Sequence record: LR756508.1
Reading direction: 5' to 3' (one strand)
Length of the DNA stretch: 64,000 nucleotides
A program made the position numbers and the translations under genes. Below are positions 5,924 to 57,412 of this stretch, one piece after another. The notes under the pieces are model-generated. The model did no database searches. It was given only the letters and a program-made list of their open reading frames with translations, and was not told the origin of the DNA. The first letter of the stretch is position 1; every line of letters begins with the position of its first letter.

Positions 5924-6676
5924 GTGAGCGTAAGATTTAAACAGCTACTTTTTGAGGTATCTTCGGCAAATGTAGTAGCTACCTCTCTAAAAAAAGAGTT
6001 GACTCCCCATCTATTTCCAAAACGCTCATATGAGATGGACGCACTGAGTGAGATGGAGGATTTTGACTATGAGGATTATGTTGATTTCATGTGGAAAGAT
6101 ATAATTGATATAGGAAGTAGATCTATAAAACTTAGAATTAGAAATTACAGCAGACTGCCAGAATTTGAGAGTTTAAAAGGAAGGTCAGATAGAAAATACA
6201 AGGAGACTGCAGTAGGTTACTTCAATGATATAGTAAAAGAAAATGGCTGGCATGTAAGTAGCGTAAATAAAAGAAAAGAATTAAAAGTAGTCTTTCGTAA
6301 AAATGAGGGGGAGCGAGTTGAGGTTGAAGGTCCTCTATATCATGTGACTTACAAAGATGCAGTTGATAAAATCCTGCAGAACGGTTTGAAGCCGAAAGAA
6401 GGAAAAAATACGTCTTTTCTCTATCCAGAGCGAATTTACCTATTTACCGAGTACAACGAGAGTTTGTTTGAGAGATTTGTTATTGAGAAGTCAAATACAA
6501 ATGTTTCTCCCCAAAAAAGAATGGCAGGTGGAATAGCGAAACCACCTTATTCCATCCTTAAAGTCGAGGATGTTAAAGACTACACGTTTTATAAGGATAA
6601 CGACATAAAAAACTCGGTGTGGACAAATCAAAGCATTCCGGATAACAAAATAGAGCACTTAAAGACGAAAGATTAA
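5924..6676 (+). CDS. ADP-ribosyltransferase-fold (Tpt1/KptA/DarT-like HxT) protein with short leader
   Basis: LYHVTYKDAVDKILQNGLKP..RIYLF motif; N-terminus MSVRFKQLLFE. Confidence 0.65.
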   Translation: MSVRFKQLLFEVSSANVVATSLKKELTPHLFPKRSYEMDALSEMEDFDYEDYVDFMWKDIIDIGSRSIKLRIRNYSRLPEFESLKGRSDRKYKETAVGYFNDIVKENGWHVSSVNKRKELKVVFRKNEGERVEVEGPLYHVTYKDAVDKILQNGLKPKEGKNTSFLYPERIYLFTEYNESLFERFVIEKSNTNVSPQKRMAGGIAKPPYSILKVEDVKDYTFYKDNDIKNSVWTNQSIPDNKIEHLKTKD

Positions 6677-7404
6677 TGTATAGACTAACGAAGATCCTGA
6701 GAGAAGAGGTAGCTCCAGCCGAAATCGAAGAGCTTGACGGTATTGGTGAGGTAAAGTCTTACCTGAATGAGCTGAATATAGAATACGACACCGAAAACGT
6801 GAATCAAAGTGAGGTAATGGTTGTTGGAGATCCGAAAAAATATATCGTAGAGTTTGATGGAAAGTTTCCCGTCGTTTCGGAGATTGAACGGTTTCTAAAA
6901 GAAAAAAGTCGACCAGGAGATTTCTACGAGTTCACAGGCGTAGATTTTAGAGAATATTACACTAATTTATTCTGGGATAACGTCGGAAAAATTTCCGAGT
7001 TCAATGAACTTTACCACGCTACTAAGGAACAACATGCAGATAGTATTCTGAAAAACGGGTTAGAAGCCAGAAAAGAATCGCGCATTCCGATGAGCAGAAT
7101 TCATCGGCCCGCAGTCTTCACAGTCAAGGACCTCGGGTATCTCGCCGATGAGACGTATGGCTCGGCGGTGATAGTAATTGATACGATGAAAATGAAAAAA
7201 GATAGCTTTACTCCAGATGTTGGAAGAGAAAAAGATTTTGAAAGAAAAGATATGGCAGCCTACCTAATTGATGAGTTAAACCTATATATTCCTGTTGAGC
7301 AGATAGTTCAGGCAGGAAAGAGAGGAACTGGAAGCTGGCGAGGCACAGTTGCTATCTATTCTGACGTCCCGCCTAAATATATTACTCAATTTGATGGAAG
7401 TTGA
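6676..7404 (+). CDS. ADP-ribosyltransferase-fold (HxT) protein with short leader
   Basis: LYHATKEQHADSILKNGLEAR..AVFTV..YGSAVIVID; N-terminus MYRLTKILREE. Confidence 0.65.
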   Translation: MYRLTKILREEVAPAEIEELDGIGEVKSYLNELNIEYDTENVNQSEVMVVGDPKKYIVEFDGKFPVVSEIERFLKEKSRPGDFYEFTGVDFREYYTNLFWDNVGKISEFNELYHATKEQHADSILKNGLEARKESRIPMSRIHRPAVFTVKDLGYLADETYGSAVIVIDTMKMKKDSFTPDVGREKDFERKDMAAYLIDELNLYIPVEQIVQAGKRGTGSWRGTVAIYSDVPPKYITQFDGS

Positions 7405-7442
7405 GTCTCACAAAATACTCTAAAGAAACTTAAAGACACAAG

Positions 7443-8267
7443 ATGGAAAACGCAAAGCATTATACTAGGATCGTTCAAAAGTTAAGAAGTTTTTTCTTAG
7501 AAAGAGATTTTGTTGAAGTTCCTGTCCAGTCGCAGGTAAAAATATTATCAGCCTGCGATGATCCAGAGACAATTATGACGACAGAGCTTGGTAGAAACAA
7601 GTGGCCACTACCTCAAACAGGTCAAATGCATCTTGAAGATTATTTTCTTAGCTATCCTGAAGAGGAGGGGTTTTTCTGTATCACTACGTCTTATAGAGAT
7701 GAACCGAACCCGATAGATGGTTGGCACGATAAGATTTTCCCTATTTTTGAGTTTGAAACTCATGGAAATATGGGAGATTTGATTGAGCTTGAATTCGAGC
7801 TAATGGATTACTTAGGTTTTAATGCTGAACCAAAAACAGTCGATTATGAGGACCTCTGCAAGATGTATGACACGAATTTGATTGGACCAGAGCACGAAAA
7901 AGAAATTCCGTATGCATTCTCTAATGTAGCGGCGATAAAGAATTTTCCTACTCGGTCTCATCCGTTTTTTAACGTTCGAAGAAAACCATTAGACTCTAAC
8001 AATTACAAAAAAGTTGACTTAATTTTACGTGGGAGAGAAACTATTGGATCAGCAGAAAGAGCAGTTAACGTCGAGCAGATGAGAGGAGATTTTTCTAAAT
8101 TTAAAGATGGGAAGTATGAACAATTTCTTACCAGAGAGTTTGGTGAACTGCGTGTGATGGAGGAACTCGAAAATTATCTTTCACACGACTTCATTGAGAG
8201 ATGCAGTGGAAGCATTGGAATAACAAGACTTCAACAAGGACTCATAGAAGAGGGAACTCTTGGGTAA
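7443..8267 (+). CDS. Class IIb aminoacyl-tRNA-synthetase-like stand-alone catalytic domain (AsnA2/EpmA-like)
   Basis: LPQTGQMHLE, motif 2 SYRDE..H..F..FEFE, KVDLILRGRETIGSAER, motif 3 GSIGITRL; no anticodon-binding domain. Confidence 0.75.
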   Translation: MENAKHYTRIVQKLRSFFLERDFVEVPVQSQVKILSACDDPETIMTTELGRNKWPLPQTGQMHLEDYFLSYPEEEGFFCITTSYRDEPNPIDGWHDKIFPIFEFETHGNMGDLIELEFELMDYLGFNAEPKTVDYEDLCKMYDTNLIGPEHEKEIPYAFSNVAAIKNFPTRSHPFFNVRRKPLDSNNYKKVDLILRGRETIGSAERAVNVEQMRGDFSKFKDGKYEQFLTREFGELRVMEELENYLSHDFIERCSGSIGITRLQQGLIEEGTLG

Positions 8268-8331
8268 GATTTAGTTTTTATATTTAAACTTGTAACCCAT
8301 CAAAATAACCAATAACTAAATTTTAAATATC

Positions 8332-8742
8332 ATGAGACTTTCAGAAAGAAAATTGCGAAGAATTGTTAAAGAAGAAATAAGCAGAGTTCTTAGAGAAGAT
8401 ATTGATACATCAATTCGCGCTGATGAGCCGTACGGTGTTGATGCTAAAGGAGGATATACCGTGTCCGTTACTGGAGGACCGGAAGCCGGTCGCTTGTATC
8501 TTGAAGTTGGACGGGGTAAGGTAGAAGATAAAGTAGAGCTTAGTGATACGGATGCTCTTAAACTCTCTACTGAGATTGAACGTATAGTTGGTGGTAGCGC
8601 TGGTGATCACAGAACCGTTAATGGCATTGAACTAGAAAGGAGCAGAGATGGCGTCTTCTTGCACCTTCCTAATGCTAGTGTATCTATGGATGTTTCTGCT
8701 GCGAAAAGACTTGCTGACCTCCTACATTCAAAGGCTGCCTAA
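8332..8742 (+). CDS. Leader-bearing protein (MRLSERKLRRIVKEEISRVLRE)
   Basis: 136 aa ORF with the shared motif. Confidence 0.8.
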   Translation: MRLSERKLRRIVKEEISRVLREDIDTSIRADEPYGVDAKGGYTVSVTGGPEAGRLYLEVGRGKVEDKVELSDTDALKLSTEIERIVGGSAGDHRTVNGIELERSRDGVFLHLPNASVSMDVSAAKRLADLLHSKAA

Positions 8743-8806
8743 AACACTTAAAAAAAAAAAAAAGACGAAAAACTAAATAAACTTTAAGATAAAAAAATGA
8801 AACACC

Positions 8807-9338: not shown

Positions 9339-12164
9339 TTAACTTTCTTCAAGAAGTTCTTTAATAAGACCTTTGGTTATATCACTTTCTTTTTCCAATT
9401 CGTTTAAGCCCTCCTCAGTAAGCGATTTTCCTGCGTTTACTTTGCTGGTTACTTTTCTTTTCTTTTCTATCAGCCTGTGAACTTTTTCATCAATAGTATC
9501 GTTTGCGAGAAGGTAATAAATATTCACGGCCTCCTCTTGTGATAACCTGTGTGCCCTCGCCTCCGCTTGATCAACTGCTGCCGGAGACCATGGAAGTTCA
9601 ATAAATGCGACGTGAGAAGCTGCCGTTAATGTAATTCCTTCACCTCCTGCAGCTATGTTTAGGATAATAAGCTGTTCGTTGGGGTCATTTTGAAACTTCT
9701 CGACAATCTCTTGCCTGTCTTCAGAGGGAACCTCCCCAGTTATTTTCAAACAGCCATATTTTTCTTCGATGGCATCGCAGACTGCCGTGTGGTGAGCAAA
9801 GAGTATAAGTTTTTCCTCGGACTTGAGGAAGTTATCAATCCAGTTCGTAATGGGTTTCAATTTTCCTTTGGCAGTTACTTTTCTAAGCTCCGCAAGTTTT
9901 ACCAAGTGTTCGGCCCCGATTGCCTTCGACATAGCCCTCGTAGCCCTCTGTTCTTTGAGCTTTTCTTTTTGGAAGTCGGGGAGGTTCTCAATTTTTTCTT
10001 GAAATTCTTCGTCCTCCAGTGCTTTATCACGGAAGTATTGGACGATGTTGTTTTCAACCTTCCTATACTCACTTCGGTTTTCAATATCAAACTTGACGAC
10101 TTTTCTGCTTTTCTCAGGAAGTTGATCGAGTACGTCTTCTTTGTTTCTGCGAATGTAGCAAGTCGAGATTAGTTTTTCGTGGAGCTCTTCGAGGTTTGAG
10201 GCTCCTGAAATATCCCAGCCCCAGTTATTGCGGTGTGCAGAGCAGAATCTGTTAACATACTCAAACCAGCCGCCAAACTCCTCTTCGAAGACGTCAAGAA
10301 TCTTCAGTTGAGAGATAAGCTCGGAAGGGCGGTTTGTGATGGGAGTTCCAGAAAGAAGAAGCTTGTATGGAACGTCTTCTGATATCTCTTTGAAGTTCTG
10401 CGCCCTAAGACTGTCCTCATTTTTGAGATAGTGGCTCTCGTCAGCCACAATCATTTCCCAGTCTTTATCAAGAAGAGTGTCTTTGTATTTTCTTAGAAGC
10501 GCGTAGTTTATAATAATAACTCTTCTTCGAAATGTTGGGTCGTCGTCGCTTGCGTTGATAATGTTGACAGATCTCTTGCTTGGAAGCCAGTCTTCAACTT
10601 CGTTTTTCCAGTTTTCTTTTAAGGAAGCGGGACAGACAATAAGAGCAGGATACTTTTCTAAGTGTTCTAACGCTCCGAGGGTCTCAATTGTGTTGTGGGT
10701 AAGAACAAAACCATCGGTTGCGTAGAGATTATCCTCCGTCTCAACTGATATGCACTGGACTTCTTCTCTTCCCACTTTTTCTATGGATCTAATGCTTCTT
10801 GAAGGTTCTCTGTTTTGAGGGTTTTTCAGTTTTTCTTTTTTTCTTTTTAACTTGAATGGTTCTATTTCGGATGGAAGCCTAGCATAGAGTCTATATGATC
10901 TTTTTCCTTCTCTTTTTTCTCCATTATGGGTATATTTTGTAACTCTATTCGACATTCTTGCCGTTCCTCCAAGTGACCATATGATTTCTTGGACGTCTTT
11001 AGCGAGCCTCTGAGAAGTTGATGTGTATTGGAACGCAGAGCCCGAAGGAGTTCCATCAGTGTCTAGAAGGCCCTGCAGTATTTCTACTCTCGTTTCAACA
11101 TTATTGAGCTTGTATTTTTTTGGAATAAATTTTTTATCGCTGATCTTATTTTTGAGTCCAAGGTCTCTTATTTTTCGGAAGATTTGATTTTTATAGGTGG
11201 TAGTAGTAACTGAGTAATCATAATCTTTCCAGGACTTACAGCTTTTAATTCTTACGTTTTTTGGTGTCCTGTTCCTGATTTCAGAAATTAAGTCGTCGTC
11301 TTTTGATGAAATTTTTAAATTGTTTTTAGATATCGAGCCGTCTCCAAGAATAGACCCAAGAACATATGGATCTACTGGAACATCTTTTTTCTTATAATTA
11401 ACAGGTTGGGAAATAATAGGAATAAACCATTTTCGATTTCCCATTGTATCTCTTAAATCATTTCTTAATTCTTTTGTTTTCTTAATTCTATGTCCACCGT
11501 TTCTAAATTTCTGATTTAAACGTTGAACTTGCCATAAATGATCTCCACTACATTTGACTGAAGTATCACTAAACTTTATTTCATAGACCTCTTTTTTTCC
11601 TCGTGGATACACTCCTGTAACTTCAGTTGATTTTCCATTGGAGCCTATTATCTCATTTCCAACTTCTATATCTTTCATCTTCTTCCACCCCGAGAGTGTG
11701 GCAAGTTTAGAACTTAGAGGCCCCGCCTTGCCGACCCCCATATGATCACCAATCAAGACCTTTTTATTTTCCTCCACGTATTCAACAGCCACCCGCTGAA
11801 ACGGATAAAGTGATTTTCCCCGCTTCAGCCCATAAACTTTATTAAGATCAGGCTCTTCTTTCGTAGCAAGTTCTTTATTCTTTTCGTACTTGTCGTACTT
11901 TTTTTGTGCCTTTTGTTTCACCGCACCTACCAGCTCTTTAACACTATCTTTCTTAATGGTTAAGTCGTACTTTTGACAGAAAGAGAGAAACTCGACCAGG
12001 TTTCTTTCATTTAGTTTTAGATGCCAGACTTCATTCGTATCATCGAACTGCCTGCCTGTTATATCTTTAACGTCTTCAAGAACTCCCCAGTCAAACTTGA
12101 AGTCAATTTCGAGTTCGTGTTTGTCGAAATCTGATACAGAGATCTCTATATTTTTAGAGGCCAT
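9339..12164 (-). CDS. SNF2/SWI2-family helicase containing an intein
   Basis: LYPFQ Q-motif, GDHMGVGK-[intein]-T Walker A, LIVCPASL, IVADESHYLKN, LLLSGTP, AGGEGITLTAA, QAEARAHRLSQ. Confidence 0.92.
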   Translation of the reverse strand: MASKNIEISVSDFDKHELEIDFKFDWGVLEDVKDITGRQFDDTNEVWHLKLNERNLVEFLSFCQKYDLTIKKDSVKELVGAVKQKAQKKYDKYEKNKELATKEEPDLNKVYGLKRGKSLYPFQRVAVEYVEENKKVLIGDHMGVGKAGPLSSKLATLSGWKKMKDIEVGNEIIGSNGKSTEVTGVYPRGKKEVYEIKFSDTSVKCSGDHLWQVQRLNQKFRNGGHRIKKTKELRNDLRDTMGNRKWFIPIISQPVNYKKKDVPVDPYVLGSILGDGSISKNNLKISSKDDDLISEIRNRTPKNVRIKSCKSWKDYDYSVTTTTYKNQIFRKIRDLGLKNKISDKKFIPKKYKLNNVETRVEILQGLLDTDGTPSGSAFQYTSTSQRLAKDVQEIIWSLGGTARMSNRVTKYTHNGEKREGKRSYRLYARLPSEIEPFKLKRKKEKLKNPQNREPSRSIRSIEKVGREEVQCISVETEDNLYATDGFVLTHNTIETLGALEHLEKYPALIVCPASLKENWKNEVEDWLPSKRSVNIINASDDDPTFRRRVIIINYALLRKYKDTLLDKDWEMIVADESHYLKNEDSLRAQNFKEISEDVPYKLLLSGTPITNRPSELISQLKILDVFEEEFGGWFEYVNRFCSAHRNNWGWDISGASNLEELHEKLISTCYIRRNKEDVLDQLPEKSRKVVKFDIENRSEYRKVENNIVQYFRDKALEDEEFQEKIENLPDFQKEKLKEQRATRAMSKAIGAEHLVKLAELRKVTAKGKLKPITNWIDNFLKSEEKLILFAHHTAVCDAIEEKYGCLKITGEVPSEDRQEIVEKFQNDPNEQLIILNIAAGGEGITLTAASHVAFIELPWSPAAVDQAEARAHRLSQEEAVNIYYLLANDTIDEKVHRLIEKKRKVTSKVNAGKSLTEEGLNELEKESDITKGLIKELLEES
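10692..11726 (-). mobile_element. Class 3 intein (345 aa) with LAGLIDADG homing endonuclease, inserted in Walker A
   Basis: Starts AGPL (Ala1) and ends VLTHN|T. WCT triplet present (HLW in block B, VQCI in block F, THN in block G). LAGLIDADG motifs PYVLGSILGDGSI and LQGLLDTDGT. Confidence 0.88.
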
Positions 12165-12298: not shown

Positions 12299-13717
12299 TA
12301 AGAGTTCAAGAAAGCCTCCGGCTTTAGCCGCAGGATGAATTGAACCGCTACTACTTATTAATAAGTGCTTTCATTGGAATTTTTGTTAAATCAAATGAGG
12401 CTGACGAAAACGCTTAAATTTAAACTCAAAGGTTTAACTGAGCACGAAAAGTACGTTTTAAACCAGACGAGACGTCAGTTTCGAAAGTCTGTCAACTTTT
12501 ATCTATATCAGATTCAAAAGAAGTGCTCCACGACACGAACCGACTATAAAGAAGAATATCAGGAGGCCAGAGACTTATTCCAACTGAACTCAGCTCTGGT
12601 ACAGCAGTCAGAAGCTTTTGCTATAAACCAGTACAAATCTTTTAGAAATAACGAAAATAACGACTGGTTCCCACATTTCAGTTCTTTCGTTGACGTTCGT
12701 TATGATAATAGAACCATAAGCTTCAAAGATAAGAACGAAGAAACAAGCGAAATTGAAGTTTCGCTCGCTACAACACAGAGCCGAGTTGAAGCCACGCTTC
12801 AAGGTGGCAAGTATTGTTTCGAAGAGTTTCAGGCTGGTGAGTTTTGCGATGCCAGGTTGCGACGTCAAGACGGCGATTGGTACCTGAAGATTCACGTCAA
12901 GCGTGAAGCTGAAATCCAAAACGCCCGAGAAGCTGAGTATTACATCGGCCTTGACCTGGGTGTCAACAACCTGGCGACAATTGCAGTTCAAAACAGGGAA
13001 GGCGAGGTCGTCGAGACAAAGTTTTTCGATGGTTCATACGTAAGCGAGAAAAAACGAAGATTCAACGCCAAACGACGTGAATACATGCGAAAAGGCTTGT
13101 GGTCGAAGCTTAAACAAACGAAGGGGAAAGAGAAACGCTTTATCAAAGACGTCAACCACAAGATCTCGAAATACATCAAAGATTTATGTGAGAAATACAA
13201 GAACTCAACGGTTGTCATGGAGAACTTGGATGGCATCCGACAGGGCATGAACTTTAACTCAAAACAAAATAGAAGACTTCATAATTGGAGTTTCGGACAG
13301 CTTCAAGAGTATATCATCTACAAAGCTCATGAGGCTGGAAGCTCCTACCGTCGAGTTCCACCCTTTAACACCTCCAAGGTTTGCGGGAGCTGCTTCGATC
13401 TTATTGATCGAAGCTCGGAAAATAAGATTGTTGGAGCTTGTGAAACCTGCAAGCAAGAGGTGTTGAACGTGGATCTCAACGCAGCAGTCAACATCGTTCA
13501 ACGTTTGTGGTATTACATAACTCAAGACTTTCTTGAGGACACTGCATCACAAACTGAGCTATGTGAATTTAGCTCGGAGGGTTCAAGCTTTGAACCCCAT
13601 CAAGGAAGCTTTGACGGCAGAGTCGACACCGCTGCGGTTGATTCGAAAAATCAGCTCGTGTCGTCATTGAGCTTGAGCTTGTCTTGAAGCCCCCGTCCTT
13701 GGACGGGGGTCATTCAC
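12299..13717 (+). mobile_element. IS200/IS605-family element carrying tnpB only (copy 2)
   Basis: TTAC|taagagttcaag-AAAG-cctccggctttagccgcagg left end; GAAG-cccccgtccttggacggggg-tcat-TCAC right end. Confidence 0.88.
12395..13687 (+). CDS. tnpB: RNA-guided endonuclease TnpB, close paralog of 1936-3228
   Basis: Same RuvC D/E/D and CGSC..CETC motifs; ATG at 12395 (MRLTKTLKFKL) aligns with the start of copy 1. Confidence 0.93.
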   Translation: MRLTKTLKFKLKGLTEHEKYVLNQTRRQFRKSVNFYLYQIQKKCSTTRTDYKEEYQEARDLFQLNSALVQQSEAFAINQYKSFRNNENNDWFPHFSSFVDVRYDNRTISFKDKNEETSEIEVSLATTQSRVEATLQGGKYCFEEFQAGEFCDARLRRQDGDWYLKIHVKREAEIQNAREAEYYIGLDLGVNNLATIAVQNREGEVVETKFFDGSYVSEKKRRFNAKRREYMRKGLWSKLKQTKGKEKRFIKDVNHKISKYIKDLCEKYKNSTVVMENLDGIRQGMNFNSKQNRRLHNWSFGQLQEYIIYKAHEAGSSYRRVPPFNTSKVCGSCFDLIDRSSENKIVGACETCKQEVLNVDLNAAVNIVQRLWYYITQDFLEDTASQTELCEFSSEGSSFEPHQGSFDGRVDTAAVDSKNQLVSSLSLSLS

Positions 13718-16462: not shown

Positions 16463-18937
16463 ATGCTTACTTTAAACGACGCGACGGGTGATCCAAAGGT
16501 TCAAGTCCGAGGAGATATTGAGTTTGTCGACCAGCCTATCCAAGACAGGACGAACGCACTTATAATAGGTCCAACAGAACAAGGACCTGCATTTGTCCCC
16601 AAAACTCTTAGAAACGAGAGTGAACTGAAAACCATCTTTGGAATAGGAGAAACCTATGTCACGCATGCGGCAAGAAAAGCGTTGGAGGACACGGACAGAA
16701 TTAAGGTCCAAAGAGTCATGCACGAACGGGGGTGGACGGGTGATCCCATAGTTTTGAAGATCGACGTATCTCGAATTAAACCAGTCTCTATAGCAAATCA
16801 AGGACCAGTAGTACCTAATGATGAAGTGGTAGCTGCTGTTCTTAACTTATCCGAGGAGTATAAATCAAAGGTAGATCTGGCGAATACGAAGCTACTAGCT
16901 CCACCGACCCAAATGTCTCCTAATGTGGGTGAGTTTATTTTAGAGTTGAATGATACTAATGGAAACAAGGTCCGCTCGCATAACCTTTCTTTTGACCCAG
17001 CATCACGAAAGTATATTAAGACGGTCGCAGATGAAGAAAACGAGCTGAACCTTTATCTTAATTTTAAGGACACTCAGCAGGAGTTGTTTGGACTGCAGGA
17101 TAATCTTGAAGTAACTCAAAGCTCTACTTTTCAGAACTCTCCGCAAAACTTTTCAAATCAGAAGTGGAAAGAGGCGAGAACGCCTTGGATCGTTTCCCAG
17201 ACAATTGGCGGAAATAAAAGATTTCCTCTTTTTCGTTTTGTATCAAGAGGTGCAGGACAAAGCGAAAACGAACGTTTTAAAATTTCAATTAATCAAATAG
17301 GAGATTTCAGGGAAGATAGCGAATATGGTTTTTTTACGGTTTTAGTGAGGGCTTTTAACGATAATGACTTCAACCAGGAAGTATTAGAACGGTTTGAAGA
17401 TGTTACATTAGATCCGAGTCACGACAGATTTATTGGGAATGTAATTGGAGACAAGTTTGATAGAGCAGAAGGCGGAAAAATCAAACACCGTGGAAGATAT
17501 GAAAATAAATCTGATTATATTCGTGTCGTTTTACACCCTGACAGAAAAAAGGCTGGAGTTGAAGCTCTTCCATATGGGTTTGAACCTTATTCTCCGCCCG
17601 TTAGTAAAGATTTTTTAGACTCAGATATATTTTTCCAAAATATAAAGTATAGAAATGAGCAGTCTGTTGGAAAAATAACAGAGTATATCACCCTCAACAG
17701 GCCAGAATCGGGAGGAAGAGATTTTGAAAAAAATATTCATTTGGGGTTTGATTTTCAGCGGGAAGAAAACATTAGCTGGTTAAACCCAGTTTCGGACTAT
17801 TTTGATACGTGTTTCTGTTACGACTTTTTTAATGACTCAGTCAATCATAATTGTGAAAATGTAAAGGATTATATTGAGAATAGCACGAACCAGTCAGATT
17901 TTCATTTAGAAGATGCTGCAACTCAATCAAATGACTACAGGCCAGACAGCATAGAAAAAAGAAAATTTACAATTGCACTTCAAGGTGGTTTTGATGGAGC
18001 AAATCCGTACCGAAAAAAAGCAAAAGACATGGAAATAACTAGTAAAAATGTCTGGGGGTTTGATCTTTCAAAACAAAACACAACTGATTACAAGTCTTAT
18101 AAAAATGCTCTGGATGTCATTGACGAAAGGGTAGGTGGTTTTAGTTATAACTTACTTAGCTTACCAGGATTAAATCTTGATGACCATGAGTTGCTTCTTT
18201 CGGAGGTAGACAGTATCGCAAGAAAGCGTGGGGACTTTTTTCATGTAGCCGACATAACAGGTTTTGGATCTACGGTACCCCAGGCGATTAACACGAGAAA
18301 CAGATACGACACAAATTATACGGCAGGCTATCTTGGATGGTTGAACGTTGAAGACACTGATCAATTTCACGATCTTGTCCCCGCTTCAGCAGTTTTACCT
18401 GCAGTTTACGTAAGAAGCGATAATATTGACGCCCCCTGGTTTGCTCCTTCAGGTTACAACAGGGGAGTGGTTGAGGATGTTCAGGACGTCAACATAAGGC
18501 GAGGCACCCGAGCAAGAGATGAGTTGTATAATGAGGACATAAATTCAATCTCTTATTTTAATCCAGATCAGATTATTGTATGGGGACAAAAAACGCTCTC
18601 AACCCAGGATTCTGACCTGCATAGAATTAATATTCGGAGACTGCTTATAACAATTAAAACTCAGACTGCTGAAATAGCCAATGAATATTTATTTGAGCAA
18701 CAGAGTCGAGCTACAAAACAAAATTTTGAGAGAAGACTGAGAAGTTATTTAGCAGAAGTGAGATCCAATCAGGGAGTTCAAAACTTCGATCTTTCCTTGA
18801 AGTTTGGAGGGCAGAATTCAAATGAAAAACTATCTCCTTATACGATAGAGGGAAAGATGAGAATAGTGCCGATAGGAGTGGTAGAATATATCCTCATTAA
18901 TTTTACGGTAAGAGAAAACCAGATTATTTTTCAGTGA
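16463..18937 (+). CDS. Tail sheath protein paralog 1 (gp18-like)
   Basis: IIGPTEQGPAFVP, LQGGFDG, APWFAPSGYNRG, VWGQKTL, RINIRRLLI. Confidence 0.85.
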   Translation: MLTLNDATGDPKVQVRGDIEFVDQPIQDRTNALIIGPTEQGPAFVPKTLRNESELKTIFGIGETYVTHAARKALEDTDRIKVQRVMHERGWTGDPIVLKIDVSRIKPVSIANQGPVVPNDEVVAAVLNLSEEYKSKVDLANTKLLAPPTQMSPNVGEFILELNDTNGNKVRSHNLSFDPASRKYIKTVADEENELNLYLNFKDTQQELFGLQDNLEVTQSSTFQNSPQNFSNQKWKEARTPWIVSQTIGGNKRFPLFRFVSRGAGQSENERFKISINQIGDFREDSEYGFFTVLVRAFNDNDFNQEVLERFEDVTLDPSHDRFIGNVIGDKFDRAEGGKIKHRGRYENKSDYIRVVLHPDRKKAGVEALPYGFEPYSPPVSKDFLDSDIFFQNIKYRNEQSVGKITEYITLNRPESGGRDFEKNIHLGFDFQREENISWLNPVSDYFDTCFCYDFFNDSVNHNCENVKDYIENSTNQSDFHLEDAATQSNDYRPDSIEKRKFTIALQGGFDGANPYRKKAKDMEITSKNVWGFDLSKQNTTDYKSYKNALDVIDERVGGFSYNLLSLPGLNLDDHELLLSEVDSIARKRGDFFHVADITGFGSTVPQAINTRNRYDTNYTAGYLGWLNVEDTDQFHDLVPASAVLPAVYVRSDNIDAPWFAPSGYNRGVVEDVQDVNIRRGTRARDELYNEDINSISYFNPDQIIVWGQKTLSTQDSDLHRINIRRLLITIKTQTAEIANEYLFEQQSRATKQNFERRLRSYLAEVRSNQGVQNFDLSLKFGGQNSNEKLSPYTIEGKMRIVPIGVVEYILINFTVRENQIIFQ

Positions 18938-24307: not shown

Positions 24308-24312
24308 GTTTT

Positions 24313-46763: not shown

Positions 46764-49700
46764 ATGGGTAAAATATTTGAAGACATTGATGACTTAGCGG
46801 AAGAAGGTGGGAAGTATGACATCCCTGAATCGAGTCCGCGTCAGCACGAGGCAGGTGAAAACGTTCAACCTGACCATAACCAGCCATATCAACACCAAGA
46901 GCAGGCTAGTCAAACGCCACAAGAGTCTCCAACATTTCAGCACGAAAAAAAGCAGGAAAGCCAGGTTCCTGAAAGCGCTGAACCCATCGAAAATTTTCCA
47001 GATCCCGAGGACCTGCAGTTACCAGACGCTCCAAATGAAGCAGAAAGGCCATCTAACCAGGAAAATAAAAATAAAGAAAAGATAGAACCATTTGACCATT
47101 TGAGTAGAGAAGAGAACGTCCCTGATAATGCTGAAAGATTTGATCACACGTCTGTGGCAGATCAAGGCGAGATAGAAAAAACGGAGCCCTATTCACACGT
47201 CCAGGATAAAAGTCTACAGCCTGATCAAGACCAGGAGTTTCAACATGAGGCGAGGTCTAATAGACCCGACTCAACTTCTTCGTATACTCACTCTGCCGAT
47301 GAAAGTCTTACGCCATCTGAAGATTCGCCATTTCAGCATGAAGATAAAAATCGGTTAAACGTTCCCGGTGAAGCTGAGACGAAAAGTCATAACTTTGATG
47401 ATAATTTAGAGCCAAGTGAAAACAACCCATTTTCGCACATTGAAGAAGAAAGTCGCGTTCCGAGCGAAAACCAGCCATTTGATCATACCGACGAGAAAAC
47501 TGATGTTCCCGAGCGCGATGAGCCGTTTCTTCACGAAAATAATGAAGAATTAAAGCCGGGTGGAGATGAAGCGTTTGATCATACTGGCGATGAAAAAGAA
47601 ATTCCGCCAAGTGATGAAACTTTCGATCACACTACTGGAAAAAGTGAAGTTCCGGCCCAAAATGAAACGTTTGATCAGCAGAGTGCAAATGAGCTAAACG
47701 TTCCCGAAGAAACTGAGACTTTTGATCATTCTGATGATGAAACTGATGTTTCAACGAGAAGTCAGGCTTTAAATCAGAGGGAAGTAAATGAAACAGAAGT
47801 GCCAGAAGAAGACGAGACCTTTGACCATACTGCCGAAGAAAGTGATATTCCGAGTGAAGATGAAGTCTTGAACCAGCAGAATGTAAATGAATTGGAGATT
47901 CCAAATGAAGATGATGTATTGAATCAGAAGGGTGCGAATGAGTCTGAGGTTCCAGGGGGCGACGAAGAATTTGAACATACTTCCCAAGAAAGTAGCGTTC
48001 CAACCGAGGATGAAGCGTTTGAACACGAAGCTAAAGAAGAAACCGTTCCAAGTGAAGAAGATGCCTATGACCATACAACTGGCAGGAGTGAAATACCTGG
48101 TGAGAGCGTGGAGTTTGATCATACTTCCGAAGCGAGCAACGTTCCTGAAAAAGATGAAGCTTACGAACACGAGGCAGAGTCAGAAATAGTTCCTGAAGAA
48201 GAGGAAGAGTTTGAACATCGCGAAGAAAATCAGTCAGAATTCCCTGCACTAAACGAAACTTTCCAGCACGAAGCTGATAGAGAATTGCAACCTGAAGGTG
48301 ATGAGGCTATCAGTCAAAGAGAACAAAATGAGTCTGAGGTTCCTGAAAAAAACGCAACCTTTGAACATGAGGAAAAGAATGAGTTGAGTGAGGTAACTGG
48401 AGGTCAAACATTTGAGCACAAATCAGATGAAGAAATAGTTCCTAGTGATGACGAAATTTTTGATCACGAGGCAGATCAAAATCTGCGGCCCGAAGATGAG
48501 GAAAGTTTTGCCCATGTAGAAGAAAATGAGCCTCAAACTCCTGTAGGCGGGACCGCTTTTGAGCATGAAGAGAGAAATGAACTGGAGGAAGTAGAAGACG
48601 ATGAAAGATACCAACATCAAGCTGATGAAGATTTGAGGCCAGAAGACGAAGAGACCTTCAGTCACAAAGAACAAAATGAGTCGGAAGTTCCAGATGAGGA
48701 TGCTTCTTTTGATCACGAAGAAGGAAATGAGGTAGAAGAAGTGCCAGAAGATGAGACATTTCAACATACAGAATCTAATGATTTGGAAGTACCTGGAAGT
48801 GATGATGTCTTCCCACAGCAAGAAAATAATGAGAGTCAGGTTCCTGATGAAGATCAACCCTTTCAACATATTGAAAGAAACGAGTCGGAAGTTCCCGGTA
48901 CAGGTGAGTTGATTGATCACGAAAGTGAGAACGATATAGAAGAAATAAAAGAAGACGAAGTTTTTTTGCAGAGGAACAGTAACGAGAGCCAAGTGCCAGA
49001 TGAAGACGAAGTGTTTTCTGCTGAGGAAGAAAATGAGTCTTCGGTTCCAGGTGAAGATGAGGTTTTTTCACAAACAGATAATAATGAGAGCCAAGTGCCA
49101 GATGAAGACGAAGTGTTTTCTGCTGAGGAAGAAAATGAGTCTACAGTGCCTGGAGAAGATGAGGTGCTCGATGCCACGGAGGAAAATGAGTCCATTATCC
49201 CTGAAGAGGCAGGAATATTTTCCACACAGGAAGAAAACGAGTCTTTAGTTCCTGAAGAAGATGAAGTGTTTTCTGCCCAGGAAGAAAATCGTTCAAAAGT
49301 GCCAGAAGAAAGTGAAGCATTTGCTACGGAAGAAGAAAATGAATCTGAAATTCCAGAGGAAGATGAAAGTTATGATCATGCAGAAGATAGGGACATACGG
49401 GAACCAGAAGAAGAGGTACCTGGACACGAGAGAGCGATAGAACTTAATAGAGAGGGATTAGTATTTGATAAAACTGCAAGTGGTGAGCAGATGAAACCAT
49501 TTGGGTTCGATGCTCCTGCTTCACAGGCGCAGACTGACACCACGGACTTTCTTCAAAAAAATGCAGCTATTCGGACCGAGCAGTTTGATAGGTTATTTAA
49601 CATTGTTGATAATCCACCTTATATATTAATTAGGCCAGACTCCGATAGAGCTGATCAAAAATCTGGAGACAGCAGGGCATTCCCGAGAGGAGCTGCCATG

Positions 49701-51503
49701 CAAGACCAGCAGCGTTTAGCTGAATTTTTCTCTTCGCCGAAAGGAATTACGTTTTTAGCTAAACAGCAGGCGCTGCAGTACATGAATCCGAGAAAACGCA
49801 CGAGATTTTTAGATCCTACCTCACTGCAAGCTTCCGCACTTCCTGGAGTTCACAGGACAAGGCATGTAGATGCTTCAGAGTCGACACTTAGCACACTGAT
49901 AAGTCAAGCTGGTTTTGGATTTATTAAAAGCTCGAAATATAGCGATGAGATCGAGGACTCTACAACTGGAATCGTCTCGGATGAAGATGCAGGACGAGGA
50001 GATGGTTATCTTGTTTATCAAATCCCGAACTTAGATCAGCTTCAGCAGGATAGTGGAGAGTCTTTTGCTCAAAACGTCTCTAATATTATAGCTACGAGAA
50101 TTGAAAACGTGAGTTACAGGTATGATTCGAGTGATAGGATGGGCGCTCAACTTGAAAGAATAAAAGACGCTGCCCTCTCGCGACTTGGAATAGGTGGCGG
50201 TGACGTGGGTGGAAGATTTAAATATTTTCTCGGTACAAACCCAAACGACGGATTTTACACAAGAGATGGCGTTAGCCTAAAAAGAACGGGGAGAAGAGAG
50301 TTTTTGGACTATAACATGACAAACCCTTATGTTGAAAATACGGCTACTTTAAATTATCCAGTTGGGGGCGAAAGAATTACTCCTGAGTTTAGTTACGGCG
50401 ATGCATTTGAAAAGTTATCCCAAGAGCAGACGAGAAATCCCACAGGATTTTCTGGCCTCAGTGCTGGATTGGGTCCGCAGTTGAGCGGAGAACTGCGACA
50501 AAAGTTGGATGGCGCAAGCGAGGACATTCGGTCCTCAAAAAACGTCGCTAGAGCTTGGAATGCCGCAGATAATAATCCCGCGATAGCAGAATATGAGAAT
50601 CTTCCAAAACAGGCTGACCATCCAACAATAGGGACCGACGAGCCTGTGGGAGGAATGAGGACAAATGACGATGGCGACGAAGAATTTTTTCAAAATGAGC
50701 TTGAAGAAGAAACTCAGTTGAGTGAAAAAGATCACGGAAAAAAAGTGTTCTTATCAAGAGGAATTCCCTCCGGGCAGAACCAAAAAAGTTATGGAATGCC
50801 GAATTATGGAATTGAAGGGAAGAATGCAGATCTTATCGATGAGCTTCCTGTTATTGACTTGTCAGACGGTAACAATGAGTTGGCCAACACGTCGGGAGAT
50901 GATGGTTCTAAATTGAGTGATGTTTATAAAGACGACGAGTCCTCGGAAGAATATGAAGACCTGGTCCCAATGAAGCTGGTTGATAAAGAAAATGAAAAAC
51001 TTGTCGTTTTTCGGTCCTTTATTAATAGCATTCAAATGAATACTAGTGTAAGTTGGGACTCACAGAGGTATCTTGGAAGACCGGAGCTATTTCACATTTA
51101 TACAGGAGCTGACAGGGAGCTTACAATTGACTTCGAGGTTCATCCTTTTTCCCATGACGGACTGGTGGCCCAGTATGAAAAAATAAATTACCTTCAAGGC
51201 ATGGTTTATCCTTCAAAGTTCCAATTTCTTGGATCTGAGCAGGGAGGAAATACTGGAGCTTACATGGTTCCTCCATTCATGGAGATTACAGTAGGAGACT
51301 TGTATAGAAGAGTACCAGGATTTATCTCTGCTCTTAACATCACGCCCGAAGCCGACTCCACTTGGAGCTTGGTAAAAGGGGAAAAGCTCCCTGAGCATAT
51401 TGAGGTAAACGTAAGCTATACGATTATTGAAGAAGGGTTGCCAGTTACTGGACAAAAGTTTATTGACTCGGAAGCTATTGAGGCTCAAAATCCACAGATA
51501 TAA
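46764..51503 (+). CDS. Baseplate tube-initiator-like protein (gp48/gp54/CIS-tube-like C-terminus) with a very long acidic repeat N-terminus
   Basis: C-terminal VFRSFI..WDSQRYLGRPE..YTGADRELTIDF..PPFMEITVGDLYRRVPGFISALNIT..LPEHIEVNVSYTII; lies between the tape measure and LysM genes. Confidence 0.72.
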   Translation: MGKIFEDIDDLAEEGGKYDIPESSPRQHEAGENVQPDHNQPYQHQEQASQTPQESPTFQHEKKQESQVPESAEPIENFPDPEDLQLPDAPNEAERPSNQENKNKEKIEPFDHLSREENVPDNAERFDHTSVADQGEIEKTEPYSHVQDKSLQPDQDQEFQHEARSNRPDSTSSYTHSADESLTPSEDSPFQHEDKNRLNVPGEAETKSHNFDDNLEPSENNPFSHIEEESRVPSENQPFDHTDEKTDVPERDEPFLHENNEELKPGGDEAFDHTGDEKEIPPSDETFDHTTGKSEVPAQNETFDQQSANELNVPEETETFDHSDDETDVSTRSQALNQREVNETEVPEEDETFDHTAEESDIPSEDEVLNQQNVNELEIPNEDDVLNQKGANESEVPGGDEEFEHTSQESSVPTEDEAFEHEAKEETVPSEEDAYDHTTGRSEIPGESVEFDHTSEASNVPEKDEAYEHEAESEIVPEEEEEFEHREENQSEFPALNETFQHEADRELQPEGDEAISQREQNESEVPEKNATFEHEEKNELSEVTGGQTFEHKSDEEIVPSDDEIFDHEADQNLRPEDEESFAHVEENEPQTPVGGTAFEHEERNELEEVEDDERYQHQADEDLRPEDEETFSHKEQNESEVPDEDASFDHEEGNEVEEVPEDETFQHTESNDLEVPGSDDVFPQQENNESQVPDEDQPFQHIERNESEVPGTGELIDHESENDIEEIKEDEVFLQRNSNESQVPDEDEVFSAEEENESSVPGEDEVFSQTDNNESQVPDEDEVFSAEEENESTVPGEDEVLDATEENESIIPEEAGIFSTQEENESLVPEEDEVFSAQEENRSKVPEESEAFATEEENESEIPEEDESYDHAEDRDIREPEEEVPGHERAIELNREGLVFDKTASGEQMKPFGFDAPASQAQTDTTDFLQKNAAIRTEQFDRLFNIVDNPPYILIRPDSDRADQKSGDSRAFPRGAAMQDQQRLAEFFSSPKGITFLAKQQALQYMNPRKRTRFLDPTSLQASALPGVHRTRHVDASESTLSTLISQAGFGFIKSSKYSDEIEDSTTGIVSDEDAGRGDGYLVYQIPNLDQLQQDSGESFAQNVSNIIATRIENVSYRYDSSDRMGAQLERIKDAALSRLGIGGGDVGGRFKYFLGTNPNDGFYTRDGVSLKRTGRREFLDYNMTNPYVENTATLNYPVGGERITPEFSYGDAFEKLSQEQTRNPTGFSGLSAGLGPQLSGELRQKLDGASEDIRSSKNVARAWNAADNNPAIAEYENLPKQADHPTIGTDEPVGGMRTNDDGDEEFFQNELEEETQLSEKDHGKKVFLSRGIPSGQNQKSYGMPNYGIEGKNADLIDELPVIDLSDGNNELANTSGDDGSKLSDVYKDDESSEEYEDLVPMKLVDKENEKLVVFRSFINSIQMNTSVSWDSQRYLGRPELFHIYTGADRELTIDFEVHPFSHDGLVAQYEKINYLQGMVYPSKFQFLGSEQGGNTGAYMVPPFMEITVGDLYRRVPGFISALNITPEADSTWSLVKGEKLPEHIEVNVSYTIIEEGLPVTGQKFIDSEAIEAQNPQI
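46857..49403 (+). repeat. About 50 coding repeats of 14-18 aa, consensus VPxEDExF[DES][HQ]xxxNExx
   Basis: Counted by hand in the translation; includes an exact 57-nt duplication (48984-49040 = 49086-49142). Confidence 0.85.
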
Positions 51504-54906: not shown

Positions 54907-54918
54907 ATAAATCAAAAA

Positions 54919-56277
54919 ATGGTTACAATTGTTGAGAGTGAAAAGGAACTGGAGGAGGTTGTAGGTCTACTAAGCAAGTCTCCTAAAAAACCAGTTCTAA
55001 TCCCATATTGGAACGACGGTAATAAGCACGTAAAAGAAGACTCGCTTCTTGCTTTAGTCATATCTTTTTCGCATGAGTCGTCCTTTTTCCTGCCTGTAAG
55101 GCATTCAGAGGTAAATTATACATTTGATGAATTTGAGGTTTTAGAAAAGACCAGCTTCTACTCTATTCGAAAAAAAGAGATTTTACAGGAGGAAAGACTT
55201 CAAGGCTTAGATCTTGATCTTACGGACATCGACCTCATGAAGTGGTTTCACTCTAATGATAAATTGGAAGCTGACTTTTTACCTCTCTATTTTAAAACAT
55301 TTCCCAGGTCTGGTCCAGAAGTCAAAAACTGCCATATTCCTGTTTATCAGTTTTGCGAAAAGTTAGATAACACACTTCCTACGTTGAGAAAACGGATTAG
55401 TGAGTTTGAAAACGTTGAAAAGAGTTCAGCGTTTGAAGAATATAATAGCGTCGTAATTAGCGTGTTTTCTAATGTTGAATCAAATGGACTCGCCGTCCAA
55501 AATGATCTCTTTGAAAACACGTTTGAAGAAAAAATAGATAGAGAATTTGAGGATTTAGTATACACTGATTACGATTTGTATACCTCTACTGGCAGACCTT
55601 CGAACTCCTCGTATAATATTAATTTTGCTGCGTTAGATCCTTCGAAAAACCAGAAAGATCCGTTTGTTTCTCGCTTTGAGAACGGAATTCTTCTTCAGTG
55701 CGATTATGACGCTTTTCACTTGAGGCTGATTGGAAACTTAATAGGCTACGATCTTCCAAATGAAAGTTTTCATAGCTATTTAGGCAAGAAATATTTTGAT
55801 AAGAATACACTTACCGACGAAGAATACGAGGACTCGAAGAAAATTACATTTCAGTTTTTGTATGGAAAGGATATCGAAGAAGCAAGAAATGTAAAATATT
55901 TCGATAAAACATTTGATTTTCGAGATAAACTCTGGAATGCTTTTAAAACTGAAAACCAATTGATTACGCCTGTCTATAAAAGAAAAATTCCGAGTAAAAA
56001 TATACCAGAGGTAAATCCTGGAAAAGCATTTTCTTATCTTATTCAAAGTTTTGAGACGGAATTTAATGTAAAGGTGATGAGGGACTTAATTGATCTTTTG
56101 GAGGATTATAGAACTGAGCTTGTGCTATATACTTATGATGCGTTCTTATTTGACTTCTGCTTAGAAGATGGAAAGAATCTTATAAAGAAAATTAAAAACC
56201 AAATGGAAAGAAAAAACATGAAAGTGAAAGCATCAATTGGAAAGTCGTATGGAAAGATGGATGACCTTGGTTTTTGA
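54919..56277 (+). CDS. Compact family A DNA polymerase-like protein
   Basis: TSTGRPSN, motif A CDYDAFHLRL, motif B SKKITFQFLYG, motif C LYTYDAFLFD. Confidence 0.75.
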   Translation: MVTIVESEKELEEVVGLLSKSPKKPVLIPYWNDGNKHVKEDSLLALVISFSHESSFFLPVRHSEVNYTFDEFEVLEKTSFYSIRKKEILQEERLQGLDLDLTDIDLMKWFHSNDKLEADFLPLYFKTFPRSGPEVKNCHIPVYQFCEKLDNTLPTLRKRISEFENVEKSSAFEEYNSVVISVFSNVESNGLAVQNDLFENTFEEKIDREFEDLVYTDYDLYTSTGRPSNSSYNINFAALDPSKNQKDPFVSRFENGILLQCDYDAFHLRLIGNLIGYDLPNESFHSYLGKKYFDKNTLTDEEYEDSKKITFQFLYGKDIEEARNVKYFDKTFDFRDKLWNAFKTENQLITPVYKRKIPSKNIPEVNPGKAFSYLIQSFETEFNVKVMRDLIDLLEDYRTELVLYTYDAFLFDFCLEDGKNLIKKIKNQMERKNMKVKASIGKSYGKMDDLGF

Positions 56278-56335
56278 AGATGTTGAGTTTTTCTCCTGTA
56301 CATATCAGTGGTTTCAATAACAGATTTGATGGAAA

Positions 56336-57412
56336 ATGGACGTAGATTTAAATAAAATACTTCTTGAATGGTCTTACAGGGTTGACAAGGGCTACCCGAG
56401 GATTACAAAAGAAGAAGACCTTCGGGTTCTAAATAATATTATTACCGAATGGTACGATAAAAAAATAGCCGATGCACTTCTTGAAAACATCGAAAGTTCT
56501 ATTTCGGAAGTTTCGCTCGGGTTAAATAATTCCTCGCTCCGACACGAAAACGAGCACAAAAAGTATACAAAAAGGCTAATAAAGAAGCTCAAGTCTGGAG
56601 GAACCCTCACACTTGAGCGAAAAGTTCAGTATACTGAAGAAAGCGAGGAAGATAGTAATGTAATCACGATTCCTGAAGGAGCGGAGGTAAAAGTTGATGT
56701 TAGCGACGATTTGATTGGAAAGCTCGTTGCTGGACTTCGCGGCGTTCTAAAGCACGGACCTGATTTTCCAGAAGAGAGTGAGAAAGCCCAGAAGGCACTT
56801 AAAAAAGCAGAAAAGGTCTTTACAAAAGACGACGGGTCATATAGAAGGATCATTCCCGTAAAGTATAAAGATTCAAAGGTTTTGATTAAACTAAGTGACG
56901 TGTCGAAAAGCACTGTTACAGACGAAGATGAAGGTCAAGATACGGATTTTTCCCCAAGTGAAGAGGAAGGTGGTGAAGATGAGAATCAGGGGGGAGACCA
57001 GCCTAAAGAAGATTCTGAAGGAGAAAAAAAGGTTTCAGAAAACGAAAACTCAAACGAAGACGAAGAATTTAGACTTCCAGATGGAGTAGTCGAGTATTTT
57101 GGCGACTCGTATTCAGATGGCCCAGAAAATCCTGATGTTATGGAAGAAGACGACGATGATCCATCGAAATATGTGGATCGTAGAGACGACGGCAAGGATG
57201 ACAAATATCCAGATAGAGGGTATAAAGAGTTTGATCCGAAAAGCGACGAAGAGGAAGAAGAAAGCGATGATGATTATCGGCACGATAAGGGCAGCGAAGA
57301 AAGCCCACCTCAAGACGAAGAGGCTGCTGAGCAGGATGCAGAAGAGACTACAGAAGAGTTGAATAGGATCGCAGAGAAACGTGAAGTTTATAAATTTAAT
57401 ATTAAAGTTTAG
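56336..57412 (+). CDS. Hypothetical protein with short-leader variant (LNKILLE) and acidic low-complexity C-terminus
   Basis: 358 aa ORF. Confidence 0.65.
   Translation: MDVDLNKILLEWSYRVDKGYPRITKEEDLRVLNNIITEWYDKKIADALLENIESSISEVSLGLNNSSLRHENEHKKYTKRLIKKLKSGGTLTLERKVQYTEESEEDSNVITIPEGAEVKVDVSDDLIGKLVAGLRGVLKHGPDFPEESEKAQKALKKAEKVFTKDDGSYRRIIPVKYKDSKVLIKLSDVSKSTVTDEDEGQDTDFSPSEEEGGEDENQGGDQPKEDSEGEKKVSENENSNEDEEFRLPDGVVEYFGDSYSDGPENPDVMEEDDDDPSKYVDRRDDGKDDKYPDRGYKEFDPKSDEEEEESDDDYRHDKGSEESPPQDEEAAEQDAEETTEELNRIAEKREVYKFNIKV

Follow-up and report, generated by a model that had tools for sequence, protein, structure and literature searches.

The capsid targeting sequence (CTS) of phage T4 was reportedly described by Mullaney and Black in 1996, as was later reviewed. 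In T4, CTS and propeptides cleaved by the gp21 protease are known for IPI, IPII, IPIII, Alt and gp24 (PMC9026906, PMC3012670, PMC5694885), and in IPIII the first 10 residues suffice for packaging, residues 4 and 7 taking part in targeting and residues 8 and 10 in processing (PMC9026906). Here we consider a stretch of 64,000 nucleotides (the window), bases 186001-250000 of LR756508.1, an unannotated record of 484,177 bp from an uncultured phage, in which many open reading frames (ORFs, read throughout with genetic code 11) begin with one of two N-terminal leaders, one short and one long. The literature offered precedents in T4 and in phiKZ and SPN3US, with no description found of a leader system of two classes and no proteome found for this phage or for cultured relatives. 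Positions are those of the window, unless they are given as record positions.

The reading that we favour, with moderate confidence, is that the two leaders act as N-terminal propeptides for capsid targeting, of the T4 kind, expanded here into a two-class system. Each leader would dock its protein to the scaffolding core during the assembly of the head, the prohead protease of the Peptidase_S77 family would cut after the terminal hydrophobic-x-Glu, and the mature protein would stay inside the capsid, to be ejected later with the DNA. The short leader would be a single unit similar to the T4 CTS, placed on larger passengers (mostly candidates for the ADP-ribosyltransferase (ART) fold, with a Zeta-toxin-like kinase and a ParB-like protein), and the long leader would be an amphipathic helix of about 22 residues, made of a clear short-like unit and a weaker one after it, which would tag small proteins that are non-catalytic and for the most part acidic; half are encoded within the head-assembly module. 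A role as capsid address is proposed because the phage has an S77 protease, the leaders end in hydrophobic-x-Glu, their conserved positions are those of IPIII, and one leader is found on unrelated cargos.

Profiles of the two leaders were built from genome coordinates and every possible start in the whole record was scored, which placed the short leader on 37 ORFs and the long leader on 35 (10 and 17 of them, respectively, in the window); a subsequent search with the LYRG family described below extended the short class by about four genes, to about 41. Matches to the short profile at 5 bits or more were N-terminal in 22 cases and internal in none, and those to the long profile at 10 bits or more were N-terminal in 25 and internal in six; the first 12 positions of the ORFs hold only about 6% of all residues. 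The ten short strings listed in the initial annotation are all found within the first 13 residues of plus-strand ORFs, at the coordinates of Table 1. It could be supposed that the motifs arose by chance or from low complexity at wrongly called starts, as there are weak members (1559-1828, 5464-5871 and 56336-57412) and several starts are GTG, TTG or ambiguous; however, this N-terminal enrichment, scores of up to 44 bits for a motif of 23 residues, and the conservation of the leaders in orthologues and in hundreds of distant family members effectively refute the idea, to which we give almost no credence.

The predicted length of the leaders is bimodal, with 8-13 residues (mostly 9-10) in the short class and 18-29 (mostly 18-22) in the long one, and cross-scores are low in both directions, so that the two classes do not collapse into a single model; they are thus confirmed as real and separable sequence types, as the initial annotation had held. 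Among identical residues of different leaders, 45% share the codon, against the 38-39% expected from codon usage, which points to selection on the peptide and not on the DNA or RNA. A relative whose proteins are about 85% identical keeps all the leaders, and there they are not clearly more conserved than their cargos (83-85% versus 75-85%), the relative being too close for this comparison.

The canonical short leader, which eight of the ten window strings follow, consists of the initial Met, 0-3 residues and then [KRQ][LF]x[KDNQ][LI]LxE; the two variants are those of 36470-37075 and 56336-57412. Counting back from the predicted cut, P8 and P6 are basic, P7, P4 and P3 are hydrophobic (86%, 91% and 100%) and P1 is Glu. 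A 13-residue variant, MD[FY]xx[LF]AK[ND]L[FL]xE, is carried by 36470-37075 and by the record ORF 449541, with a looser 13-residue form on P0021, a member of the LYRG family described below. The ORF 56336-57412 is probably not a case of a typical leader, judging by its N-terminal 39 residues, which match gene 192 of Flavobacterium phage immuto, with the conservation running through the putative cut site (35 residues). In the long leader, of about 22 residues, the hydrophobic positions (P15, P11/12, P7 and P3/4) are those of an amphipathic helix. When a matrix of the short unit is run along the canonical long leaders, it scores highest at residues 7-14 (+1.4, where the background is -19.7 ± 6.9), with a weaker second peak at 15-22.

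The two leaders share their ending, hydrophobic-x-Glu, the type of site cut by T4 gp21: all 66 leaders with a site have L, I, V or F at P3, and P1 is Glu in 35/37 short and 31/35 long leaders, although this residue is part of the definition of cut sites that are themselves predicted from sequence. The T4 propeptides read from AF158101 have about 10 residues and the same kind of ending (FIAE in IPII and IPIII, LLRE in gp24, LIAE in gp22), and the conserved P7, P4, P3 and P1 of the short leader correspond to residues 4, 7, 8 and 10 of the IPIII CTS, hydrophobic at the first three and Glu at the last. In T4, changing this Glu to Asp abolishes cleavage. The short-unit matrix also scores 9.9 at the probable maturation site of the capsid protein (residues 55-62, ending in LLKE) and 7.6 at the N-terminus of the scaffold. 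The propeptide of T4 gp24, alone among the T4 leaders scored, is positive, though weakly, with the position-specific scoring matrix (PSSM): its score of 6.8 exceeds the 95th percentile of the null. An internal segment of T4 gp67, tried as a match to the long leader, was dropped with a score of 0.4.

The protease required by this reading is present as a Peptidase_S77 of the T4 gp21 type (PF03420, E 5.4e-26) at record 156480-158204, the gene being split by a LAGLIDADG intein, with LAGLIDADG_3 and Intein_splicing matches between the two Peptidase_S77 halves; no relatives of this intein-containing protease were found in IMG/VR. A capsid protein of the gp23 type (PF07068, E 3.8e-82) is encoded at record 171904-173538, and the earlier capsid candidates, ORFs 164547-166193 and 166282-168375, were dismissed. 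The gp22-like scaffold has homologues in Microcystis phage Mel-JY01 and in immuto. From terminase to capsid, this module holds 16/35 of the long-leader genes and 1/37 of the short-leader ones (p 1.3e-5). Directly upstream of the protease, in the position of T4 gp67/68, the long-leader ORF at record 153401 has homologues in both of these phages, with a leader of the long type in immuto and a loosely similar N-terminus in Mel-JY01; beside the protease, the long-leader ORF at record 161027 is 46% identical to a protein of the metagenomic contig L019. A gene for ribosomal protein S21 (record 169713-169952, E 3.5e-10) is found a short way upstream of the scaffold and capsid genes, as it is in Mel-JY01, in L019 and in the bS21 phages that infect Bacteroidota (PMC9723584), and the leader genes lack Shine-Dalgarno sequences; together, these two features suggest a host among the Bacteroidota.

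The class of leader goes with the size of the cargo. The median length of the ORFs is 259 residues for the short leader and 108 for the long one across the genome (p 4.5e-11), 246 and 108 in the window (p 3.6e-4), and 249 and 108 once BLAST families are collapsed, with 15 families that carry only the short leader against 34 that carry only the long (p 3.6e-7), one more, the ParB-like pair, being mixed. The same division is found elsewhere: L019, of 6.8 kb, has an intein-free S77 protease and, after it, five long-leader ORFs (60-164 residues) and two short-leader ones (240 and 288), while L036, taken from a contig of 179 kb, has ten short-leader ORFs (220-296 residues, a kinase among them), one long-leader ORF (78 residues) and one further ORF (267 residues) with the 13-residue variant; when six independent contigs are pooled, the figures are 264.5 and 105 residues (p 1.2e-4). 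Thus, the claim that the short leader heads larger proteins holds in the window, in the genome, in the family-collapsed set and on other contigs, and the classes, far from merging into one hidden Markov model (HMM) devoid of cargo association, separate and take that association with them.

A possible objection is that the leaders are indeed capsid tags, while the sorting of their cargos is historical, inherited with the families as these expanded, so that either leader would deliver any cargo. Some 22 of the approximately 41 short-leader genes come from one family (LYRG), which has kept its leader widely; the Tpt1-like trio of the window are mutually related; the association with enzymes falls to p 0.04 when the superfamilies of the window are collapsed; ParB-like paralogues carry either leader; and a short-like unit lies inside the long leader. 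Inheritance by descent in expanded families is, then, the explanation of part of the pattern. As an explanation of the whole we hold it to be rather unlikely, however, because the gap in size survives the family collapse, the short leader is also found on an unrelated kinase and on coiled-coil, ParB-like and unassigned cargos, the 34 long-leader cargos are mutually unrelated and yet uniformly small, the same split is seen on distant contigs, and the two classes differ in their genomic location.

With regard to the kind of cargo, the mature parts of the short-leader proteins form BLAST families of 18, 4 and 2 members and 12 singletons. The largest is the LYRG family, of about 250-285 residues, with a conserved LYRG, a PKRSESKFA motif and a late Glu, which is matched 23 times in the genome; the two halves of a broken copy account for two of these matches, so that there are about 22 copies in all. 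The broken copy (record 180899-181604) comprises two ORFs with two TGA codons inside the match and seems a decaying paralogue. There are 325 representative clusters of this family in a library of 1.84 billion proteins, and the short leader is kept in 112 of 153 of its proteins (149 representatives from the library and four close copies); a tblastn search of cultured and deposited phages with a LYRG protein matched only LR756508.1 itself, and neither Mel-JY01 nor immuto has the family.

The LYRG family has no Pfam match; its nearest named family in the ESM Atlas is DUF2441, and a profile search of the PDB with the 18 paralogues returned only helical-bundle noise from a variable insert. An AlphaFold2 (AF2) model of 27179-27964 (pLDDT, the predicted local distance difference test, 96.2) found no match in the PDB with Foldseek; in exhaustive alignment (VIA-align), BC2332 came first (2aua_B, Z 7.0 over 134 residues), followed by Arr (Z 5.2), diphtheria toxin and exotoxin A (Z 4.3), and by AvrPphF-ORF2, PARP domains and a KptA-like entry. 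Of the candidate residues for an ART catalytic triad (R-S-E or H-Y-E), R37, R82 and E230 each occur in at least 90% of the 97 sequences compared, while S85 reaches at least 90% only among the 18 paralogues of the genome. The cargo may accordingly be described as a candidate ART-type core with a helical insert of about 95 residues, all the Z scores of the model being below 8: it may resemble BC2332 and DUF2441-like proteins, Arr and the ARTs of the diphtheria-toxin type in these structural matches and in its conserved Arg, Ser and Glu columns, and it differs from them in the helical insert and in having no Q/E-x-E before the conserved Glu.

Among the other short-leader cargos, the ORFs at 5924, 6676 and 27967 form the Tpt1-like trio, with Tpt1/KptA (PF01885) scores of 14.0, 15.7 and 23.6 bits, all under the gathering threshold of 26, and the third also matches an RNA 2'-phosphotransferase in PHROG (E 1.4e-5); the ORF at 37149 has the same N-terminal motif. 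The short-leader ORF at record 330235 is a Zeta-toxin/AAA_33 kinase above the cut-off. The ORF at 34078 shares 172 features with a ParB_N cluster in the ESM Atlas (feature score 0.94), although neither it nor its neighbour, 34730-35584, has a Pfam match to ParB (PF02195) at E 0.1 or less; these neighbours, one with the short leader and the other with the long, are 41% identical over 124 residues (E 2e-30). For 36470-37075 the match to the phiKZ internal head protein (PF12699) is of 16.4 bits, below the cut-off of 27, with a PHROG match to an internal head protein at E 0.0014. The initial annotation considered eight of the ten short-leader proteins to be enzyme-like: seven have a lead to an enzyme, so that most of the claim stands, but these leads are all below curated cut-offs or come from the fold or a language model. 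In the window this gives 7/10 short against 1/17 long leaders (p 9e-4).

The long-leader cargos have a median mature length of 88 residues, are mostly acidic, and reached the Pfam cut-off in none of the 29 scanned, which agrees with the earlier statement that they lack recognisable catalytic motifs, with the exception of the ParB-like 34730-35584 (284 residues). The ORF 8332-8742 was modelled by single-sequence AF2, with one of five models confident: in it, a helix at residues 5-21 is followed by disorder at 22-32, exactly at the predicted cut, and then by two beta-beta-beta-beta-alpha repeats, whose folded domain matches the PUR/Whirly nucleic-acid-binding fold (E 4e-4, template-modelling (TM) score 0.48). 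On this model, at least one long-leader protein may bind nucleic acid. The Cys-rich, zinc-ribbon-like cargo of 33298-33555 has a weak match to the restriction-alleviation protein Lar (E 0.007, below the cut-off), which, if real, would parallel the anti-restriction internal protein IPI* of T4.

These cargos also invite the suggestion that the leaders are not capsid addresses but autoinhibitory or regulatory helices, oligomerisation helices, or signals for the membrane, for secretion or for the host. As modelled by AF2 for 27179-27964, the leader forms the beginning of an unbroken helix (2-21) that is part of the fold, many of the cargos look like potentially toxic enzymes, and packaging is only inferred. 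Set against this are the charged and amphipathic character of the leaders, unlike that of hydrophobic signal peptides; the presence of their terminal protease motif also at the probable cut sites of the capsid protein and the scaffold; their occurrence at the head of small non-enzymatic proteins; their clustering with head genes, with S77 protease neighbours on unrelated contigs; and a format that is the same as that of the experimentally proven propeptides of T4 (PMC9026906). We therefore judge a role away from the capsid to be quite improbable.

Several points weigh against the reading of the leaders as a two-class capsid-targeting system. It was reached from sequence and predicted structures, for an uncultured phage, with packaging, cleavage, binding partner and copy number all inferred, and the cut sites were placed with the very motif by which they are defined. 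The T4 leaders of IPI, IPII, IPIII and Alt score negatively with both profiles and with the PSSM, so that these scores do not establish a shared origin with the T4 CTS, and the T4-type late promoter TATAAATA is not enriched upstream of the leader genes (0/72 versus 5/577), a result that is uninformative. The ART assignments rest on Z scores of 7.0 at most and on HMM matches below threshold. The LYRG family, about half of the short class, carries its leader ancestrally, and the ParB-like pair is a natural leader swap, in which paralogues with different leaders indicate that the type of cargo does not dictate the leader. In T4 it is the small and abundant internal proteins that carry a CTS of 10 residues, so that the size rule is not a general one but specific to this clade. 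The two codes are nested and not independent, because the long leader holds a short-like unit at residues 7-14, and this weakens the case for separate addresses. Finally, there are internal or C-terminal copies of the long motif in several ORFs, which might represent gene fusions, modules for internal cleavage or C-terminal propeptides.

The proposal of two address codes thus comes out divided: the separation of the classes, their correlation with cargo and their fit to a capsid role are in its favour, while the nested units, the ancestral leader of the LYRG family and the swap in the ParB-like pair are not, and functionally distinct codes are plausible but unproven. The case for different core partners is circumstantial, and is made because the long-leader genes concentrate in the head module, where a single short-leader gene is found, because the conserved protein just upstream of the protease has a long-type leader, in immuto as well, and because the N-terminus of the scaffold and the likely cut site of the capsid protein resemble the short unit. 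Under the capsid-targeting reading, the long-leader proteins would most likely be components integrated in the core, possibly of high copy number, and the short-leader proteins would be enzyme passengers of lower copy number. A bolder form of the same idea, tentative and in our estimation doubtful, is that of an address in two tiers coded by valency, in a T4-related clade that probably lives on Bacteroidota: a bivalent helix of 22 residues would bring into the core, at high copy, small proteins that bind nucleic acid or counter host defence, and a monovalent tag of 9-10 residues would load, at low copy, the injected enzymes (over 20 ART-like paralogues, together with kinases and ParB-like proteins).

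Should the leaders prove to be capsid addresses, sequence alone would be enough to list what an uncultured huge phage packages and injects, some 70 proteins here, with an unusual number of ART-like enzymes, presumably for the takeover of the host or for counter-defence. The existence of two tag lengths would bear on the old question in T4 of what the CTS binds and how the copy number of internal proteins is controlled, and would make available two natural tags with which foreign proteins could be loaded into phage heads. If valency were also the code, the ejected proteome of such phages (at least 10% of the genes) could be read from sequence, and the dosage of a cargo would be programmable by the choice of its leader.

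Table 1. ORFs with short or long leaders in the window, and ORFs with further copies of the long motif (window positions unless marked; bits are long-profile scores; aa, amino acids)
Feature	Position	Strand	Remarks
Short-leader ORF, 250 aa	5924-6676	+	GTG start; leader 11 aa ending LFE; LYHVT motif; weak Tpt1/KptA (ART clan) match
Short-leader ORF, 242 aa	6676-7404	+	Leader 10 aa ending LRE; LYHAT motif; weak Tpt1/KptA match
Short-leader ORF, 175 aa	26652-27179	+	Leader 9 aa ending LVE; unassigned cargo; paralogue at record 330978
Short-leader ORF, 261 aa	27179-27964	+	Leader 10 aa ending LVE; LYRG family; modelled ART-like fold
Short-leader ORF, 144 aa	27967-28401	+	Leader 10 aa ending LKE; Tpt1/KptA E 6e-5; weak ART-PolyVal and PARP matches
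Short-leader ORF, 189 aa	34078-34647	+	Leader 9 aa ending LYE; ParB N-terminal-domain-like (language-model lead only)
Short-leader ORF, 284 aa	35584-36438	+	Leader 10 aa ending LFE; second LYRG-family member of the window
Variant short-leader ORF, 201 aa	36470-37075	+	Leader 13 aa ending FVE; coiled-coil cargo; weak phiKZ internal-head-protein matches
Short-leader ORF, 420 aa	37149-38411	+	Leader 10 aa ending LFE, then directly LLYHVT; no family match
Atypical short-leader ORF, 358 aa	56336-57412	+	LNKILLE; leader status doubtful
Long-type motif, aa 13-32 of a 138-aa reading	723-1139	+	Would be internal should 261-1139, the longer ORF, be the true gene
Long-leader ORF, 108 aa	1200-1526	+	17.7 bits
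Weak long-leader ORF, 89 aa	1559-1828	+	6.8 bits
Long-leader ORF, 126 aa	3254-3634	+	40.3 bits; predicted cut after aa 21
Long-leader ORF, 98 aa	3655-3951	+	41.5 bits; predicted cut after aa 22 (LQE)
Long-leader ORF, 98 aa	3969-4265	+	18.5 bits; lacks first 4-5 leader residues; predicted cut after aa 19
Long-leader ORF, 150 aa	4291-4743	+	40.8 bits
Long-leader ORF, 83 aa from ATG at 4857	4857-5108	+	44.3 bits; longest ORF, from 4779, probably mis-started
Weak long-leader ORF, 135 aa	5464-5871	+	7.3 bits
Long-leader ORF, 136 aa	8332-8742	+	41.5 bits; modelled
Long-leader ORF, 169 aa	8807-9316	+	40.6 bits
Long-leader ORF, 237 aa	32104-32817	+	17 bits; second, internal motif copy near aa 113-126
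Long-leader ORF, 85 aa	33298-33555	+	40.8 bits; Cys-rich cargo
Long-leader ORF, 80 aa	33570-33812	+	17 bits
Long-leader ORF, 57 aa	33852-34025	+	42.4 bits
Long-leader ORF, 284 aa	34730-35584	+	Leader about 29 aa; ParB-like cargo
Long-leader ORF, 104 aa	57424-57738	+	40.0 bits
ORFs with internal or extreme C-terminal long-motif copies	32104-32817, 32833-33294, 261-1139; record 152404-152838; L019:3118-3408

Other genes are found around the leader arrays. In the middle of the leader genes there are two ORFs that carry no leader, one similar to class II tRNA synthetases (7443-8267; PF00152, E 7e-9) and one that appears thioredoxin-like by eye (5161-5451, with a WCxPC motif). Two TnpB-type paralogues (1936-3228 and 12365-13687), with OrfB_IS605 and Cas12f1-like TNB domains, lie within the region of structural and internal proteins, and on the minus strand, which has few genes, a SNF2-family helicase of 941 residues (9339-12164) holds a LAGLIDADG element inside its SNF2 domain, probably an intein. 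The portal ORF (record 145763-149923) may also hold an intein, since its 1386 residues are roughly double the 617-621 of its relatives. A repeated family of 500-800 residues, with DUF7487 and Mom-like matches and a Cys-rich N-terminal block, has copies at 22538-24307, 24265-26652, 30515-32035 and 38465-40198, and another right after the protease (record 158244-159944); scattered as they are between structural and leader genes, these may be mobile or homing-type genes. There are, in addition, tandem tail-sheath paralogues of 824 residues (16463-18937 and 19952-22426), with Phage_sheath_1 matches on their orthologues in contig L013, and two adjacent giant ORFs of 1602 and 1579 residues (41950-46758 and 46764-51503), with no Pfam match, upstream of baseplate-like genes.

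Among the described systems, phiKZ, 201phi2-1 and SPN3US resemble this phage in being giant phages with a gp21-related protease that cuts after Glu, many internal or ejected head proteins, and large families of head paralogues (20 members in family B of SPN3US) whose N-termini are conserved between diverged members (PMC5694885, PMC9026906). They differ in their motif, S/A/G-x-Glu, and in propeptides that often exceed 100 residues (PMC5694885, PMC9026906), and a short-leader system of two classes has not been described in them; the present phage, with its gp23-type capsid and an S77 protease close to those of Flavobacterium and cyanophage relatives, is T4-like and not phiKZ-like. The ARTs fused to MuF or portal proteins and the polyvalent effectors of Iyer et al. 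(2022) have in common with the cargos described here that they are predicted to be loaded in the head, there of myoviruses, and injected, and that they are near head-morphogenesis genes; there, packaging was inferred from the MuF or portal fusion or from a T4-like gene context (PMC9503650), whereas here a family that lacks a Pfam model, with about 22 stand-alone paralogues, bears a candidate cleavable tag of 9-13 residues.

The closest likeness is with the T4 CTS, in its N-terminal position, its length of about 10 residues (19 in T4 IPI), its L/I-x-Glu end, its S77 protease, and the use of one tag on unrelated and rapidly evolving cargos, which in T4 include the ADP-ribosyltransferase Alt. The short leader in particular resembles the propeptide of gp24, and the long motif at the C-terminus of some ORFs recalls the C-terminal propeptide of Alt (PMC9026906). 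On the non-shell proteins of T4 the propeptides span about 7-20 residues (PMC9026906, PMC5694885), a range beside which the two length classes of this phage can be set, although a helical leader of 22 residues and two units has no described counterpart in T4. About five genes are tagged in T4, and more than 70 here, in two classes that correlate with the size of the cargo.

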